Shown: positions 5,306 to 59,227 of the stretch, one piece after another
Layout of the letters: every line of letters starts with the position of its first letter
Position numbering within the stretch: position 1 is the first letter of the stretch
Virus record (IMG/VR): IMGVR_UViG_3300042502_001233
Coordinates: 1 to 64,000 of that record
Length of the DNA stretch: 64,000 bases
Reading direction: 5' to 3' (one strand)
Notes under the pieces: generated by a model
Database searches by the model: none
What the model saw: the letters and a program-made list of their open reading frames with translations, nothing else
Told to the model about the DNA's origin: nothing
Position numbers and translations under genes: made by a program

Positions 5306-5320
5306 AACATTTATGTTTAG

Positions 5321-5393
5321 TTGAGTAAGAGGGTTTCGAACCCTACGCTACCACCCGTCTAGGTGGTCTTCTAACCAATTAAAGTATTACCCA
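5321..5393 (-). tRNA. degenerate tRNA, anticodon uncertain
   Basis: TGGGTAA/TTACTCA acceptor, D and T arms; anticodon loop not 7 nt. Confidence 0.45.
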
Positions 5394-5474: not shown

Positions 5475-5660
5475 TTCCTATGGCGTTGATGCAACTTAAT
5501 AGATTCGTCAATCCATTAGCGGTTACACCAACTAACCATTTCTGTGCGGATATCAGTGGAATCGAACCACAACCTCTTCAGCGTCGAAGAATACTCTCAT
5601 TTAAAACCTATGGTTTACAACACATAAGTTTAACATAAATGATGGTGTGGCCACACCCCA

Positions 5661-6960: not shown

Positions 6961-7359
6961 CTACATTTTTAAAACTTGATTATAAATTTCATCAATAGTT
7001 AACCCATTTTTATGTAAATTAACAATAAACTCAATATGTTCTTTAGATGTTAACTTAGGTCTCCTATTTTCTAAATTTTCTTTTCTTGTCACAACCCTTA
7101 GATTTATTAATCTATTATCGTCCTTATCTCGGTTAATATGGTCAACTTCTAAACCATCTAATTTATCAGTAATAAAAACTTCAGCTACTAATCTATAAAC
7201 ACTAAACTGATGTCTTTTTTCATCTATTTTTAATTTTATCCTATGATAACCTTTTTTATTTACAAATGGTTTTAAAATTCTATTCGTTAGAATATTTCTA
7301 ATTCTACCTAAATCTGAAATTTCATAAAATGTTTCTCTAAATTTTTTCCAATTTTCCAT
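6961..7359 (-). CDS. NUMOD4-HNH homing endonuclease
   Basis: ENWK..YEISDLGRIR; VDHINRDKDDNRLINL. Confidence 0.85.
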   Translation of the reverse strand: MENWKKFRETFYEISDLGRIRNILTNRILKPFVNKKGYHRIKLKIDEKRHQFSVYRLVAEVFITDKLDGLEVDHINRDKDDNRLINLRVVTRKENLENRRPKLTSKEHIEFIVNLHKNGLTIDEIYNQVLKM

Positions 7360-7373
7360 TTTAATTTTTTAAT

Positions 7374-7405
7374 AAAAAAAGCCTGACATTTTTACTGTCA
7401 GGCTT
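7374..7405 (-). terminator. attenuator terminator of Phe/Glu/Asp/Ala tRNA operon
   Basis: AAGCCTGACA-GTAAAAA-TGTCAGGCTT followed by U tract. Confidence 0.85.
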
Positions 7406-7430
7406 ATCATTTATATCGTTAATTTAAACG

Positions 7431-7520
7431 TTAACTTATGACAGTGTTTGACCTTCCGTAAGAGTAATCCTCCTCGGCTGCGAAAAATGCAAAATCAAAT
7501 ATGTTAGTTAAAGTTCTCAT
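7431..7520 (-). CDS. attenuator leader peptide MRTLTNIFDFAFFAAEEDYSYGRSNTVIS
   Basis: 29-aa ORF between promoter and terminator; 11 consecutive F/D/A/E codons; 3' ACTGTCA complementary to terminator 5' arm. Confidence 0.8.
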   Translation of the reverse strand: MRTLTNIFDFAFFAAEEDYSYGRSNTVIS

Positions 7521-7601
7521 TGTGTTTTCTTTTTGTATTTGTTTATAAATATGCGACTTTTTTTAAAAAGTCATTTTTTTTCTTTGTTTTTAATTATAGT
7601 G

Positions 7602-7633
7602 CAAAGATACGAACTGTTTTAATACATGTCAAG
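7602..7633 (-). promoter_or_regulatory. Bacteroidetes-type housekeeping promoter
   Basis: CTTGAC...TATCTTTG, matches the TAnnTTTG -7 element; same motif recurs upstream of many units. Confidence 0.7.
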
Positions 7634-7747
7634 TTTTTTTGCAACTTTTTTTTGAAATATTTTATATTTCGTTGTTTCTCAATTGATTAAGATAAGGTTT
7701 CATCTCATCTTTTTCTGTGTATTTGAATACTCAGCAAAACATATTTA

Positions 7748-8668
7748 TTATTTGTTGTTTGTTTTTTTAGACCAGTTTGTGTTAGTATCACCTTTTTTAA
7801 ATCCACCTAATGCACCACCTTTATTTATATTTAAAACTTCCCAACCTTCTAACTTTCTATCATCAATTCTTTTATTTTCAATCACACCTATTTGGTTTTC
7901 TGGATAAAATTTATCATCTTCAAACCACTCAAATTCTTCTTTTTTTTCCATTAAATCTCTAACAAACTTATTTGATGATTTGACCATGTGAGATTTTTTT
8001 CTTGTTGTTGGGTCAAAACTTAAACCGATATATATTTTTTTTACGTTATAAAACCTAATTTCATAAATTTTACGTTTACATTTATTACCAACAACCCTAA
8101 AATGTTTACCAACGTCATCTAATAAATTATATCTAACAGCATGACGATACGCTCTACGATATTTTTTTTGAAATTCCCATTTCGTTTCGCATTTTAACGC
8201 TAAATCTTTTACTTCATCATAAGACCAATAATGTTTTACATCCATATGACTAGTAATTTCATCATAAATTTTATGTCTAATAGCATAATCATAGGCGCCA
8301 GGTGCTTCTTTAATAAAATCATTTTTTTTATTATATTTTAAAGCTATTTTTTTCACACTATCGTGACACCATAAATTATTTCCTTTTAATAACGCATAAC
8401 ATTCATCTAAATAACCATGTTTTTTAGCAAATTGAAAAGCACCGCTTTTTCCATGGAAATCTTTTTTATAGTCACAACTTTTAACATATTCTATTAATAA
8501 TTCATATGTCCATTTAAATTTAGCTAAATCTCTGGTAATTTCATGATAAAAACCATGTCTTCTAGCATATTTAACCGCACCACTATATTTACGTTGAAAA
8601 TCATTTTTGGAATCACATTCTAATACCGCTAATCTGACGTTTGTTTCATTCCATCGTCTTTCTTTCAT
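7748..8668 (-). CDS. GIY-YIG-like homing endonuclease with N-terminal repeats
   Basis: 4 repeats W..E.V...A..C..K..F.K; C-terminal KIY..IYIGLS...R...H. Confidence 0.75.
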   Translation of the reverse strand: MKERRWNETNVRLAVLECDSKNDFQRKYSGAVKYARRHGFYHEITRDLAKFKWTYELLIEYVKSCDYKKDFHGKSGAFQFAKKHGYLDECYALLKGNNLWCHDSVKKIALKYNKKNDFIKEAPGAYDYAIRHKIYDEITSHMDVKHYWSYDEVKDLALKCETKWEFQKKYRRAYRHAVRYNLLDDVGKHFRVVGNKCKRKIYEIRFYNVKKIYIGLSFDPTTRKKSHMVKSSNKFVRDLMEKKEEFEWFEDDKFYPENQIGVIENKRIDDRKLEGWEVLNINKGGALGGFKKGDTNTNWSKKTNNK

Positions 8669-8686
8669 AAAAAACATTTTTTTTCG

Positions 8687-8769
8687 TACCGCTGGCGAGA
8701 CTCGAACTCGCACACCCTCACGGGCACCAGATTCTTAGTCTGGCGTGTCTACCATTCCACCACAGCGGC
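8687..8769 (-). tRNA. tRNA-Leu(AAG)
   Basis: CCAGA-CTAAGAA-TCTGG, class II variable arm. Confidence 0.9.
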
Positions 8770-8774
8770 AGGTA

Positions 8775-8863
8775 CAAGATAGTTAATTTTGTGGATTTGA
8801 ACCACTTCGTTCGCATTTTAAGTGTGAATTTTTAACCAGTTTTTGTTTGCTGAAACTATCTTT
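8775..8863 (-). ncRNA. Y-RNA-like/tRNA-mimic RNA (TTCAGCAA-stem family, copy 1)
   Basis: terminal stem AAGATAGTT/AACTATCTT enclosing TCAGCAAAC, an anticodon-like arm and T arm GTGG-TTCAAAT-CCAC. Confidence 0.5.
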
Positions 8864-8866
8864 TAG

Positions 8867-8949
8867 TACGGATAGTCGGACTCGAACCGACACTCATATT
8901 TCAGAACACGGGTCTAAGCCGTGTGTGTCTACCATTCCACCATATCCGC
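8867..8949 (-). tRNA. tRNA-Leu(TAG)
   Basis: CACGG-CTTAGAC-CCGTG. Confidence 0.9.
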
Positions 8950-8958
8950 AAATCTGAA

Positions 8959-9102
8959 TTAGATTTCTTCTAATTCAATATCTTCCAAGTTTTCTTGTTC
9001 TTTATTCTCTTTATTGGCACATGTAATATGCACAAATTTTTTGTCTACTAGTAAAGCAGCTCCGTGGATAATACCACCGCATTCGCAACAACTAAATTTC
9101 AT
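8959..9102 (-). CDS. small putative zinc-binding protein
   Basis: MKFSCCECGG...HITC, acidic tail, 47 aa. Confidence 0.5.
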   Translation of the reverse strand: MKFSCCECGGIIHGAALLVDKKFVHITCANKENKEQENLEDIELEEI

Positions 9103-9132
9103 ACTTCCATAATTTTAAATAACATGTTATTG

Positions 9133-9216
9133 TAGCCAGAGTGGGAATCGAACCCACACGTCCTTGCGGACACAAGATTTTGAGTCTTGCGCGTCTACCT
9201 GTTTCGCCATCTGGCC
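9133..9216 (-). tRNA. tRNA-Leu(CAA)
   Basis: CAAGA-CTCAAAA-TCTTG. Confidence 0.95.
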
Positions 9217-9285
9217 ATGATGTGATTGGCATTTTAACCATTGCATGAATTTAATCAAGTGTGAGTATACGCCTTTCACATTTTG

Positions 9286-9372
9286 TAGCTAGAGTGGGAC
9301 TCGAACCCACATGGACCTTTCGGTCCGCCAGATTTTAAGTCTGGTGCGTATACCTAATTCCGCCATCTAGCC
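9286..9372 (-). tRNA. tRNA-Leu(TAA)
   Basis: CCAGA-CTTAAAA-TCTGG. Confidence 0.95.
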
Positions 9373-9379
9373 ATTATTT

Positions 9380-9904
9380 TTAATTCATCTTCCTAATTGA
9401 ATGATGTCTTAATCTATGACAATTTGAACATAAAACGTCGCATTTATCAATCTCATTTTTTATTGTTTCCCATTTTTGAAATTTTATCTTATTAAAATTA
9501 GGGTCTTTCTCAGACGGGTTTAAGTGATGAAAATCAAAAATACAATAATTATTATCATTTAATTTTATTTTACAATCATTACATTCACCACCTTTATATT
9601 GAACCATTTTAATTTTAACGTTTTTAACTCTTTCCGAATGATAAATATTACTACATTTTTTGCAATAACCGTTATAATCATCTCTATTTGTACGTTTATA
9701 ATATTCGCTTAATGGTTTTAATTTTTGACATTTTGGACATAATTTATCAACAGATGATTTTTTGTTATGTTGATTAAGTTTAGTTTTTAATTCAAATTTT
9801 TTAAGCCAATATTTTACGTTACTTTGAGAACATTTTAATTCATCAGCAATTTCTCTTTGAGATTTACCTAGATTGATAAACTTTATTAATAAATCTTTTT
9901 CCAT
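9380..9904 (-). CDS. HNH endonuclease
   Basis: CPKC, FDFHH...LCSNCHRLRH. Confidence 0.8.
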   Translation of the reverse strand: MEKDLLIKFINLGKSQREIADELKCSQSNVKYWLKKFELKTKLNQHNKKSSVDKLCPKCQKLKPLSEYYKRTNRDDYNGYCKKCSNIYHSERVKNVKIKMVQYKGGECNDCKIKLNDNNYCIFDFHHLNPSEKDPNFNKIKFQKWETIKNEIDKCDVLCSNCHRLRHHSIRKMN

Positions 9905-9967
9905 TTGTGTTTTATATTAAAAATAACTCACTTTTGAAAAAAGTAAATATTAACCAGTGATTTATTG

Positions 9968-10053
9968 TAGGGCTAGCTGGACTCGAACCAGCGTTATACT
10001 TCTCGTCTCCATCTTGTAAGGATGGGATGTTTAACCAACTACACCATAGCCCC
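9968..10053 (-). tRNA. tRNA-Val(TAC) with long variable region
   Basis: CCATC-CTTACAA-GATGG plus 16-nt variable region. Confidence 0.85.
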
Positions 10054-10067
10054 GTTTTTGGTAGGTT

Positions 10068-10367
10068 TTAACCTACCTTGATGAAGTCTTCGTTTTCAAT
10101 GGCTCTTTCAATCCATCTAATCAATTCAGACCCTTTGATTTCAGCATCGAATGTGGTTGTACCCAAGTCCTCAGCCAAAACAAGTGTTGGAATTTTTTCA
10201 ATTTCTCTAGTGTCCATCACATATGATTTTTGAACCGTTTTGATTGGAAATTGATAAGTTCCGTCTAATACTTCAACTTTATAATATAGGTTCCCACCTA
10301 CATAGTGGCTAAATCTAGCCAGATTCTTTGACTTATATAAGTCTTTTTTGATTTCATTTTTTTCCAT
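10068..10367 (-). CDS. hypothetical protein
   Basis: ORF, start reassigned to MEKNEIKK outside tRNA-Cys. Confidence 0.7.
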   Translation of the reverse strand: MEKNEIKKDLYKSKNLARFSHYVGGNLYYKVEVLDGTYQFPIKTVQKSYVMDTREIEKIPTLVLAEDLGTTTFDAEIKGSELIRWIERAIENEDFIKVG

Positions 10368-10388
10368 CGCTTCCTTCTTTATCATTAG

Positions 10389-10459
10389 AGGCGCCGACTG
10401 GATTCGAACCAGTGTACGGGGATTTGCAGTCCCCTGCCTAGCCACTCGGCCACAGCGCC
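10389..10459 (-). tRNA. tRNA-Cys(GCA)
   Basis: canonical, U73. Confidence 0.95.
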
Positions 10460-10471
10460 ATTGTTATCAAT

Positions 10472-10500
10472 AAAAAAACCCATCTGGTTAGGATGGGCTT
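10472..10500 (-). terminator. attenuator terminator of Cys/Val/Leu tRNA operon
   Basis: AAGCCCATC-CTAACCA-GATGGGTTT-TTTT, 12 nt before tRNA-Cys. Confidence 0.85.
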
Positions 10501-10528
10501 TTTGAGAGAGATACTTATCTTATTCAGA

Positions 10529-10612
10529 TTAGTTAACACACAAGAAGCCCAGCTGTGTTTCCACAAGCAAGCATAAGCTTAAAAGGACTAATATGTTAAA
10601 AGTATTTCTCAT
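10529..10612 (-). CDS. attenuator leader peptide MRNTFNILVLLSLCLLVETQLGFLCVN
   Basis: 27-aa ORF rich in L/V/C; TGGGCTT complementary to terminator 5' arm AAGCCCA. Confidence 0.8.
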   Translation of the reverse strand: MRNTFNILVLLSLCLLVETQLGFLCVN

Positions 10613-10653
10613 TTTGTTTTTTTGTTTTCTGTAAGTTAAACTTTGATACAGTG

Positions 10654-10685
10654 CAAATATACTAACTATTTTAATACAAGTCAAG
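10654..10685 (-). promoter_or_regulatory. Bacteroidetes-type promoter
   Basis: CTTGAC...TATATTTG. Confidence 0.7.
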
Positions 10686-10731
10686 TGTTTTGCAATTTTT
10701 TTTATAATAAATATGTAATTTTTTAAAAAAG

Positions 10732-11313
10732 TTATTTTTTTGACCAATCTTTTTTAGATTGTCTAGCAGCTGCTTTTGATATACCACAACTAGTTGCTTT
10801 AAAACTAGGGCCTTGCATTCCATCTAATGCAACATCATCTTGCTTGTTTTGGTTTTTAATATACTTTTGATATTTTTTTAAATTTATTTTTAATTTGGTA
10901 CCATCTTCTAACTCTCTATAGATAATATCTGGCATTTCAAAAGATGTTCCATCTAAATAATCAGCTTCTTGAGCCATAGTTGTATTACAACTTGATTTAA
11001 ACTCTTCTTCGTCTACGACTTCAACAAAGTTTCTAATGTACGCCCCTTTTATAAAATTTTCATAATTCTTTTTACGTTGAGCTTCTCTTTTTTCTTTGGC
11101 AGCAGCTCTTTGTTCTGGTGTACCAAACATTGGTTTTTGAGTTGTTGTTTGAGTTGTTGGTTCAGTCGTTGTTGGTTGAGTTGTTTGACCTTGCGCACCC
11201 AACGTACCAAGCGTCATTGCGGCACCAGCCGCTAAGCCTTTCCAATTAACTTCGTTTAATTGTTCTTCTTCTAATAAAGATTCTCTAAGTTTTTGTTTTA
11301 TAAACGTTTTCAT
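10732..11313 (-). CDS. hypothetical protein, possibly virion-associated
   Basis: N-terminal MKTFIKQKLRE motif, T/Q/P-rich linker. Confidence 0.7.
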   Translation of the reverse strand: MKTFIKQKLRESLLEEEQLNEVNWKGLAAGAAMTLGTLGAQGQTTQPTTTEPTTQTTTQKPMFGTPEQRAAAKEKREAQRKKNYENFIKGAYIRNFVEVVDEEEFKSSCNTTMAQEADYLDGTSFEMPDIIYRELEDGTKLKINLKKYQKYIKNQNKQDDVALDGMQGPSFKATSCGISKAAARQSKKDWSKK

Positions 11314-37076: not shown

Positions 37077-37511
37077 TTATTTTTGCGGTGAATATTTTTC
37101 TATATAATTTATTAAATTATTCAAATAATTAATATCTTCTTTTACATTACCCAACAATTTATTACATTTGTCACATAAAATATCTCTAACAACACCAGTT
37201 AAATGACAATGGTCCACATGTGTGTTTTTATCATTTTTTAGAACATCACTACAGATAGAACATTTATTATCTTGTTTATCTAATTTTAAAAAATATTCTT
37301 CTTTTGTAAGACCATAATTTCTTAAAATTGAATTATATTTTATTTTTTCTTTCTGAATAGGGTTTTGATATCTAATCTTAGTCCTATTATTTTCACACTC
37401 TTTACAATAATGATTTAAACCATCTTTATTATAATTCTTAATACCAAATAAATCAATACTTTTTACTTCTTGACATTTGGAACATCTTTTTACGTTCGTA
37501 TTTATTTCCAT
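37077..37511 (-). CDS. endonuclease VII-like HNH protein
   Basis: YGLT...QDNKCSIC..VDHCH..G.VR.ILC..CN. Confidence 0.85.
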   Translation of the reverse strand: MEINTNVKRCSKCQEVKSIDLFGIKNYNKDGLNHYCKECENNRTKIRYQNPIQKEKIKYNSILRNYGLTKEEYFLKLDKQDNKCSICSDVLKNDKNTHVDHCHLTGVVRDILCDKCNKLLGNVKEDINYLNNLINYIEKYSPQK

Positions 37512-37580
37512 ACTAATAAATATCTAACATTTTGTAAAAGTGCGGATAATTTTTAATATTCACCGCATTTGTAAACTTTG

Positions 37581-37668
37581 CGGAGATAGTAGGATTCGAA
37601 CCCACAAGCCGTTTCCGACCACAGTTTTCAAGACCGCCAAGCTTAGTCCACACTGCTCTTATTCTTCC
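37581..37668 (-). tRNA. tRNA-Ser(TGA)
   Basis: GCGGT-CTTGAAA-ACTGT, long variable arm, G73. Confidence 0.8.
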
Positions 37669-37850
37669 AATTCATCGTCCTTTTTAATCTCTACAAAGAT
37701 TACGGTGAACCCACCTTCTTTATGAAATCTTAGCTCTCCGTGATATCCACTGGCATCAGCTATCTTTCTGTACTTATCGACTATCAGGTCGAAATCTTTT
37801 GTAAGGTTTACAGTTTTCTCTGTTCCTAATTTTCTCACCAACTCACCCAT
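37659..37850 (-). CDS. hypothetical protein
   Basis: 63-aa ORF, first cistron after attenuator. Confidence 0.6.
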   Translation of the reverse strand: MGELVRKLGTEKTVNLTKDFDLIVDKYRKIADASGYHGELRFHKEGGFTVIFVEIKKDDELEE

Positions 37851-37861
37851 AGTCTTAAAAT

Positions 37862-37896
37862 AAAAAAACCCGATTAAGTTTTCACTCATCGGGTTG
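37862..37896 (-). terminator. attenuator terminator of Ser/His/Trp/Ile/Met/Asn/Arg tRNA operon
   Basis: AACCCGAT-GAG...CTTA-ATCGGGTT + U tract. Confidence 0.85.
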
Positions 37897-37921
37897 TATA
37901 TTGTTATCTTTTGAATTCTTA

Positions 37922-38020
37922 CTAGAACTCTATGATGTCACAATTAGACATACCCGACACTTGGTGACTATTGCGTCTCCAATTCGAAATCGAAATCATA
38001 TGTATGTTAATTGTTCTCAT
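37922..38020 (-). CDS. attenuator leader peptide MRTINIHMISISNWRRNSHQVSGMSNCDIIEF
   Basis: 16 consecutive I/N/H/M/S/W/R codons; GTCGGGT complementary to terminator arm ACCCGAT. Confidence 0.8.
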   Translation of the reverse strand: MRTINIHMISISNWRRNSHQVSGMSNCDIIEF

Positions 38021-38056
38021 TTTGTTTTATTTTTAATGTTGTTTTTAAATTCTTTG

Positions 38057-38088
38057 CAAATATACGAACTTATTTAATACAAGTCAAG
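38057..38088 (-). promoter_or_regulatory. Bacteroidetes-type promoter
   Basis: CTTGAC...TATATTTG. Confidence 0.7.
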
Positions 38089-38108
38089 TTTTTTGCAACT
38101 TTTTTTTT

Positions 38109-44290: not shown

Positions 44291-44350
44291 AATTTCTAAT
44301 TTTTTGTTTATTATAAATATACCACACTTTTAAAAAATGTAAAGTGTTTG

Positions 44351-44423
44351 TAGTTCTAATCGGACTCGAACCGATATCTCTCCGTTTTAGAGGCGGGTGT
44401 ATTCACGTTAATACTATAGAACC
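44351..44423 (-). tRNA. amber suppressor tRNA (anticodon CTA)
   Basis: GGTTCTA/TAGAACT acceptor, loop CT-CTA-AA, canonical T arm; weak anticodon stem. Confidence 0.8.
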
Positions 44424-58849: not shown

Positions 58850-59227
58850 TGGTGGAGTTATGGGGAATCGAACCCCAGTGTTGCATATTCTTCAAAAGCT
58901 TTCTACATGTTTATCTAGTTTCTAATTCTAGCAAAGTTGTGCTGCGTTATTTATCCCGATGGAAGTGCAGCGACCATCGTTCCTTTTTTTACAACTAGGA
59001 AGTTGGTTCTTGGTGATTTATCACCATCAAGTGGAATTACCACTATTAGCTATAATTAGGCTACAGCTACCTCTCCTGCGAAACTGAATGCAGCTTCGTT
59101 AAGGAAATTTTCAGAAACGATGAAATCGTTGTCAATTCAATTTTTTAATAGACAGATTAAAGTGCTTCCAATCTAGCACTACATGCTTACGATTTACGAC
59201 TATATCCAGTCAATACCGTTTAACCCC
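58850..59227 (-). ncRNA. ssrA: tmRNA
   Basis: GGGGTTA/TAACTCC-A-CCA acceptor with G3:U70, T arm, tag ORF DNDFIVSENFLNEAAFSFAGEVAVA*. Confidence 0.9.

Follow-up and report, generated by a model that had tools for sequence, protein, structure and literature searches.

In Enterobacteria, the leaders of ilvGMEDA, ilvBN and leu consist of a short ORF with Leu/Val(/Ile) codons, the hairpins 1:2, 2:3 and 3:4, and a terminator. These attenuators sense several amino acids at once, and the codon choice of the leu leader sets its sensitivity. In E. coli, a leader peptide lies upstream of the aminoacyl-tRNA synthetase genes pheST. The genes for tRNAs are usually described as promoter-controlled, through growth rate and the stringent response. 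Phages such as T4 and T5 carry tRNA arrays interspersed with homing endonucleases, and why phages carry tRNAs and when these are expressed is still debated. Huge phages have up to 67 tRNAs, and the paper that describes them (PMC7162821) mentions neither attenuators nor leaders; leader peptides also precede leuS, alaS, thrS and trpS in Streptomyces lividans (PMC8079986). A full-text literature search found no earlier description of a leader-peptide attenuator for tRNA operons or phage tRNA arrays.

The window analysed here is a stretch of 64,000 nucleotides, positions 1 to 64,000 of the 362-kb IMG/VR record IMGVR_UViG_3300042502_001233, a huge phage; its proteins match those of this contig at 99% identity, and the DNA runs with the window are lake-water metagenomes. 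The window is AT-rich (~31% G+C), carries nearly all of its genes on the minus strand and holds 32 tRNA genes and one tmRNA. One of its tRNA operons follows an element, hereafter unit B, that combines a short ORF, an operon-specific codon cluster, a terminator, an antiterminator and an anti-antiterminator; the genes behind it are not those of amino-acid biosynthesis, transport or charging enzymes. Most probably, unit B controls the phage tRNA operon behind it by ribosome-mediated transcription attenuation at a leader peptide, with feedback from tRNA supply. The initial annotation had proposed an attenuator whose leader matches the Leu, Val and Cys tRNAs of its operon, and this reading is strongly supported by paralogous units, by relatives, by the genome LR756502.1, and by permutation, covariation and substitution tests. 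Sequence elements, alternative structures, conservation, covariation and leader–operon correspondence were computed for nine units; we infer that the leader is translated, that read-through is conditional and that tRNA supply is the physiological signal.

Architecture of unit B and its operon

The elements of unit B, with folding energies compared with those of shuffled sequences, are as follows.

10654-10687, minus strand: promoter of Bacteroidota type, with TTG at -33 (10684-10682), a 20-nt spacer and TATATTTG at -7 (10661-10654)
10612-10529, minus strand: leader ORF, 27 codons plus TAA, MRNTFNILVLLSLCLLVETQLGFLCVN
10562-10591, minus strand: regulatory codon block, codons 8-17, LVLLSLCLLV, with Leu, Val or Cys at 9 of 10 codons
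10585-10606, minus strand: region 1, the 5' arm of the anti-antiterminator, whose partner is region 2
10533-10551, minus strand: region 2, codons 21-27, whose partner is region 1 or, via GGGCUU, the terminator 5' arm
10472-10504, minus strand: intrinsic terminator (regions 3 and 4 and the U7 tract), with 5' arm 10503-10492, which doubles as antiterminator partner, loop 10491-10485, 3' arm 10484-10479 and seven U at 10478-10472
10608-10530: anti-antiterminator 1:2, -19.6 kcal/mol, z -2.3, 4 of 200 shuffles as good
10553-10490: antiterminator 2:3, -17.7 kcal/mol, z -4.8, 0 of 200 shuffles as good
10505-10470: terminator 3:4, -14.0 kcal/mol, z -5.5, 0 of 200 shuffles as good

The promoter lies downstream of the stop codon of the preceding gene (10732, minus strand), and transcription would start near 10648. 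Near-identical copies of it are found at 7635 and 38090 in the window, where the chance expectation is 0, and the motif TTTG-N18-21-TAnnTTTG is enriched, with 13 occurrences in the window against 4.25 expected. In two Flavobacteriales genomes (L170 and L181) and in L252, a tRNA(CAT) gene stands immediately behind a near-identical promoter, which is alike in its -7 box and around the start as well; ARAGORN labels this tRNA Met, and from its 5' end we read it as the initiator type. Judged by these sequence likenesses, the promoter of the phage units looks like a copy of one that the host uses for tRNA genes. Relatives of the unit were gathered from metagenomes and genomes through an exact promoter 17-mer, which biases the set towards close relatives. 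These scans returned mostly chance matches, and their yield was a handful of additional variants as well as the tRNA promoters of hosts; a second scan with a B-specific 19-mer returned the same six contigs only.

Bacteroidota mRNAs usually lack a Shine-Dalgarno sequence and have an A-rich upstream region. The 5' UTR of unit B (10648-10613) is A-rich and contains neither a Shine-Dalgarno sequence nor another ATG, and the leader ORF begins at the first ATG of the inferred transcript. Its Leu codons are TTA (three times), CTT (twice), TTG (twice) and CTG (once), next to GTC, GTG and GTT for Val and TGC and TGT for Cys, and the coordinates and codons given in the initial annotation are correct; outside the matching set are the MRNTFNI start and Ser12. 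Relative to the amino-acid usage of the window, the block is enriched with a binomial P=4e-7, its boundaries, like those of the other blocks below, having been set after inspection of the data.

Pairing between the leader and the 5' side of the terminator, another element of the original proposal, is borne out: TGGGCTTCTTG (10551-10541) and CAAAAAGCCCA (10504-10494) form base pairs at 10 of 11 positions, the remaining one being a C.A mismatch, and the antiterminator duplex has P 0.016-0.06 against shuffles. The effect of a ribosome on these structures was modelled in three B variants by folding the transcript up to the terminator loop with a 30-nt ribosome block placed at each codon, taking the paired fraction of the terminator 5' arm as the readout. 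In the absence of a ribosome, this fraction was 0.02 in two variants and 0.50 in the one from the window. A ribosome with its A site at codons 1-14 gave 0.55-0.74 in each of the three; codon 15 gave 0.74, 0.55 and 0.30, and positions from codon 18 to the stop gave 0.07 or less. The modelled behaviour is that of a trp-type attenuator, and the scan places the sensing positions at codons 8-15 (L V L L S L C L). Folding without a ribosome also yields the antiterminator for several other units and, in part, for the B variant of the window (0.5), and some units outside class B have a weaker anti-antiterminator 1:2 or none at all.

Behind the terminator, the operon is laid out as follows.

7748-10459, minus strand: controlled operon with Cys, Val and four Leu tRNAs and ORFs
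10459-10388, minus strand: tRNA-Cys, starting 12 nt past the U tract
10364-10068, minus strand: small, conserved ORF
10053-9967, minus strand: tRNA-Val(TAC)
9904-9380, minus strand: HTH-containing ORF
9372-9285, minus strand: tRNA-Leu(TAA)
9216-9132, minus strand: tRNA-Leu(CAA)
9102-8959, minus strand: ORF of 47 codons
8949-8866, minus strand: tRNA-Leu(TAG)
8769-8686, minus strand: tRNA-Leu(AAG)
8674-7748, minus strand: weak GIY-YIG-like ORF

The distance of 12 nt between the U tract and tRNA-Cys agrees with the initial annotation and leaves no room for a promoter of its own. Scans of the minus strand from 10471 to 7403 detected no promoter-like or terminator-like sites.

We propose that host RNA polymerase would start at the host-tRNA-like promoter and that a ribosome would begin the 27-codon leader. 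If aminoacylated Leu, Val or Cys tRNAs arrived slowly, the ribosome would stall within codons 8-15 and cover region 1, region 2 (GGGCUU) could then pair with the terminator 5' arm, and transcription would read through into the Cys, Val and four Leu tRNAs. With fast decoding, the ribosome would reach region 2 and the stop codon, the terminator would form and the transcript would end at 10472; without translation, regions 1 and 2 would pair and the terminator would form likewise. The net effect would be a negative feedback in which this group of tRNAs is made only when the decoding of its codons is limiting.

Two freshwater metatranscriptome runs contain 0.93 of the sampled words of 10472-10650, and 0.35 and 0.29 of those of 10300-10800. 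These shares fit an abundant RNA that extends from promoter to terminator; they could equally come from a relative with diverged flanks or from poor capture of tRNAs in the libraries.

Several further features of these arrays were recorded. Homing-endonuclease-like genes (NUMOD4/HNH, endonuclease VII) are scattered in the tRNA arrays of the window (6961-7359 and 37077-37511, minus strand). Small conserved ORFs lie inside attenuated operons, at 10068-10364 and 37659-37847 (minus strand) in the window and at 9261-9464 and 12001-12339 in L253. LR756502.1 encodes a homologue of the ORF at 10068-10364, with 52% identity; Pfam gave no match for this ORF, and PHROG a weak one only, to a family of unknown function. 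In five relatives (L003 851-932, minus strand; also L004, L006, L007 and L134), attenuator B is followed first by a tRNA-Cys(GCA) whose variable arm is long, a class II-like feature that is unusual for a Cys tRNA.

Paralogous units and the genome LR756502.1

The window contains two further units of the same organization, and a fourth, unit D, is known from pattern scans of relatives only.

7373-7635, minus strand: unit A, with the same promoter, leader ORF 7520-7431, block FDFAFFAAEED and terminator 7403-7373
37861-38090, minus strand: unit C, with the same promoter, leader ORF 38020-37922, block INIHMISISNWRRNSH and terminator 37893-37861

Downstream of unit A are tRNAs for Phe, Phe, Glu, Asp, Asp, Glu and Ala. 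Unit C is followed by His, His, Trp, Ile, Ile, Met, Asn, Asn, Arg(ACG), two Arg(TCT) and Ser(GCT), and unit D, with the block KTQTTYQTQYQPK(S/G)GKP, by Pro, Lys, Gly, Gln, Tyr and Thr. Each block tracks its own operon: matching codons number 11 of 11 in A, 9 of 10 in B, 16 of 16 in C and 16 of 17 in D (binomial P of 6e-8, 4e-7, 6e-9 and 2e-7, respectively). The amino-acid sets of the four units do not overlap and jointly cover all 20 amino acids, and the true assignment of leaders to operons is the best of the 24 permutations. No leader lies directly in front of the window tRNA clusters upstream of 6940, 36982 and 5474; the real units of these clusters lie further upstream, with inserted endonuclease genes intervening.

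Individual units show additional features. An HNH gene separates attenuator A from its first tRNA in the window; in relatives, the terminator and the start of tRNA-Phe are within ~20 nt of each other. At 37575-37660 (minus strand), where relatives place Ser(TGA) right behind attenuator C, the window has a degenerate tRNA-Ser(TGA)-like sequence. It is called by neither ARAGORN nor Rfam, and the unit C leader retains two rare TCG codons despite this degeneration. A 5' UTR element, CATATTTATAAACAAA, is conserved at 7545-7560 (minus strand) in the window and in units A, C0 and D of relatives, and in some units a weak A/U hairpin precedes it. Classes A and D have this element, as do some units of class C; class B lacks it. 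A third, more distant unit (L101 1274-1755; L150 3800-4300) has a leader MNTFLRPSL(T/S)LYSQHLYAGQGN.. and a terminator. It is followed in L101 by Pro, Gln and His tRNAs; in L150, Val and Gly come after a degenerate Pro-like sequence. Its leader–operon match is less clear.

The translation-related inventory of the window extends beyond the units. A tmRNA gene lies at 58850-59227 (minus strand; Rfam RF00023, 63 bits; not in the ARAGORN list), and a tRNA with anticodon CTA, an amber suppressor that ARAGORN labels Pyl, at 44350-44423 (minus strand). The unit C leader ends in TAG (37922-37924) with TAA directly after it, and operon A of relatives includes a tRNA(TCA) (L007 2808-2883). The CTA tRNA, the TAG-TAA leader end and the tRNA(TCA) together hint at stop-codon recoding in this phage group. 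ARAGORN also calls a tRNA with a four-base anticodon (agac) at 5320-5393 (minus strand), and upstream of tRNA-Ala, at 5480-5660 (minus strand), is a tRNA-like remnant with a T-loop motif.

An independent set of units comes from LR756502.1, a 642-kb phage genome that is distant from the window phage; phage genomes of such size have been assigned Bacteroidetes hosts (PMC7162821). Within 100 kb of this genome, five tRNA arrays each stand behind a short ORF and a terminator.

Unit F/H/K: K/H/F-rich leader; tRNAs Phe, His, Phe and three Lys
Unit S/R: leader SSRSRSS; tRNAs Arg, Ser and Arg
Unit E/Y/I/G/A (H3): leader IETIGYTGYEGAY; tRNAs Glu, Tyr, Ile(TAT), Gly and Ala
Unit N/L/V/I/T (H4): leader NLNMNLNTLTVVNNTL; tRNAs Asn, Leu, Val, Ile and Thr
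Unit P/D/Q: leader QVQRQVVVDQDQPD; tRNAs Pro, Asp and Gln

A promoter of Bacteroidota type is recognisable for four of the five; the search turned up no such promoter for the Ser/Arg unit. The partition of amino acids is not that of the window lineage, and the leaders track the new one: the true assignment of the five leaders is the best of 120 permutations. The non-matching codons of the unit H5 leader form an L/I/V run. Region 2 of the LR756502.1 units falls between codons 17 and 31; for classes B, C and D, its start is near codon 21 (about codons 21-24).

Codon matching, selection on the leaders and alternative readings

The initial annotation had gone further, proposing that the unit B leader samples all four Leu isoacceptors of its operon and that the match extends to the level of codons. 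The first proposal is weak. Leu codon usage in window genes is TTA 0.56, TTG 0.21, CTT 0.14, CTA 0.07 and CTG 0.01, and by an estimate from this usage eight random Leu codons cover all four Leu tRNAs about 30% of the time, so the sampling is no more than expected by chance. The four Leu tRNAs of the operon read all six Leu codons, so that any Leu codon counts as a match. The single CTG is codon 21, inside the antiterminator arm (region 2); a ribosome that stalled there would promote termination, and in the B1 variant this CTG is out of frame. Relatives without Leu(CAA) retain TTG. GTC, one of the Val codons named in the initial annotation, has no standard wobble cognate in Val(UAC).

Matching at the codon level is not significant in unit B alone and becomes so across the nine units. 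Scoring leader codons 2-20 whose amino acid belongs to the operon's set (n=102), 96 are standard-wobble cognates of an operon tRNA, against 87.8 expected from synonymous usage (P=0.0005). The leaders touch 46 of 55 tRNA species, against 42.6 expected, which is not significant (P=0.08). Among individual cases, two ATA codons occur with Ile(TAT) in unit H3 of LR756502.1, and an ATT codon, at codon 22 and therefore beyond the scored range, with Ile(GAT) in unit H4; AAG, GAG and CAG codons occur in front of operons that carry Lys(CTT), Glu(CTC) and Gln(CTG). Synonymous codons in the blocks are rarer than in genes (0 of 5000 simulations, all blocks combined), and RNA pairing may contribute to this use of rare codons.

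A wider reading, which we offer tentatively and with the balance tilted slightly against it, is that huge Bacteroidota phages split their tRNA complement into operons, each an isoacceptor-resolved tRNA homeostat whose leader reports, codon by codon, how well the very tRNA species of that operon are being supplied for decoding. A shortage of host tRNAs, their poor fit to the codon usage of the phage or their destruction by anticodon nucleases would then switch on phage tRNA supply. The same attenuator could instead respond to amino-acid starvation through uncharged tRNA, with tRNA read-through as a by-product or part of a general stress response. The promoters of the units resemble host tRNA promoters, which bacteria commonly place under growth-rate control, and to a stalled ribosome missing and uncharged tRNA look alike, being indistinguishable in the trp, his and leu attenuators. 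However, extra tRNA would give no relief from amino-acid starvation, and both the exact partition of tRNA identities, re-sorted in LR756502.1, and the codon-level matches in units H3 (ATA) and H4 (ATT) fit feedback on the products themselves. We consider starvation sensing unlikely, if far from negligible, and retain the tRNA-supply attenuator as the preferred reading.

Variation among the units bears on both the RNA structures and the peptide. Terminator stems show compensatory substitutions between variants. In class C, the pairing of region 2 with the terminator 5' arm changes from GUCGGGU/ACCCGAC to CAGGU/ACCUG, and the 3' arm changes too. In class A, GGUC/GACC becomes GGGUC/GACCC, with the added C in the terminator loop, outside the terminator stem; a duplex test limited to stem arms missed this antiterminator, which uses loop bases too, and was rerun with arm and loop. 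In variant A5, the class A terminator is wholly replaced and the new region 2 matches it (UGGGGU/ACCCUA). Within class B, the terminator and the core of region 2 are invariant (the terminator sequence is identical across the six IMG/VR contigs), and antiterminator covariation comes from the paralogous classes only. The RNAalifold consensus of class B has five one-sided compatible changes, two in the 1:2 stem and three in the inner hairpin, and one outer pair is lost through a gap in L005.

The leader ORF is open in all six B variants and in all variants of every class. Of 19 substitutions at operon-matching codons, 18 stay within the operon's amino-acid set (15 synonymous and 3 to another amino acid of the set) and 1 falls outside. 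In the B variants, all three substitutions at Leu or Cys codons are synonymous, and Ser12 changes to Gly. Two variants of class D have AAG/AAA and CCT/CCG positions swapped with codon composition unchanged. Downstream of the blocks, residues and reading frames drift; in the B1 variant, two +1 insertions put the C-terminal 9-10 residues into another frame. This pattern indicates selection on the amino acids encoded by the leader.

Could the leader be an ordinary small gene for a signal-peptide-like or toxin-like peptide, with the hairpin as its terminator and the tRNAs expressed by constitutive leak-through? The peptide is indeed hydrophobic with a signal-peptide-like N-terminal region, and RNA of the leader stretch seems to build up as a separate species. 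Yet the C-terminal third shifts frame between variants, and with the B1 frame change the peptide lacks the whole-length conservation of a small hydrophobic peptide or type I toxin. The paralogous leaders also differ widely in composition, each tracking its own tRNA operon, and region 2 covaries with the terminator, which makes a small gene very improbable. The reading of the hydrophobic peptide as a remnant of a signal peptide or lipoprotein was rejected in view of the frame change and the paralog pattern.

A non-coding RNA with an incidental ORF, whether an sRNA, a tRNA-processing leader or a T-box-like tRNA-binding riboswitch, would account for the nucleotide conservation of leader and terminator above that of the flanks and for the stable fold (z -3.2), but the ORFs are open in every variant of every class, block substitutions are overwhelmingly synonymous or within the set, and Rfam yields neither a family at threshold nor, even at E<=10, a T-box match, so that we give this reading hardly any weight. 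At gathering and permissive thresholds alike, Rfam has no family for the unit B element; the best scores (gathering threshold in brackets) are Phe_leader 21.3 (55), Trp_leader 18.4 (41) and Thr_leader 15.1 (55). Searches of the region against GenBank phages with megablast and blastn gave no match.

Comparison with known attenuators and phage tRNA arrays

If the preferred reading holds, an attenuator read by the very tRNAs that it controls would provide direct product feedback on tRNA supply, and huge phages would manage their decoding capacity group by group. The idea that phage tRNAs compensate for depleted host tRNAs would become testable with simple reporters. The units would be compact, natural, codon-specific sensors of decoding speed, with possible reuse in synthetic biology.

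T-box elements share with unit B a tRNA-specific control of read-through by competition between terminator and antiterminator. They bind uncharged tRNA directly, without translation, and control aminoacyl-tRNA synthetase or amino-acid genes; no T-box features were found in unit B. As in the leader peptides of aminoacyl-tRNA synthetase genes, attenuation in unit B would feed back on the translation component that serves the sensed codon. In the synthetase leaders this component is the charging enzyme, with one amino acid per unit; in the phage units it is the tRNA genes, with 3-7 amino acids. The arrays of the window resemble those of T4, T5 and huge phages in forming large clusters interleaved with endonuclease genes, here HNH, endonuclease VII-type and a weak GIY-YIG-like ORF. 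For those earlier arrays we found no report of a leader-peptide attenuator, whereas the arrays of the window have predicted ones.

Unit B also resembles the ilv and leu attenuators, with which it shares the promoter-proximal ORF, the three alternative hairpins, the intrinsic terminator and, by prediction, the multivalent sensing, although there is no sequence similarity and no Rfam match between them. The ilv and leu attenuators control bacterial biosynthesis enzymes, whereas unit B is predicted to control phage tRNAs that read the codons of its leader, Cys included. What is new in unit B, as read from its sequence, is that it would act on the very tRNAs by which its leader is decoded, and that it is found in a phage.
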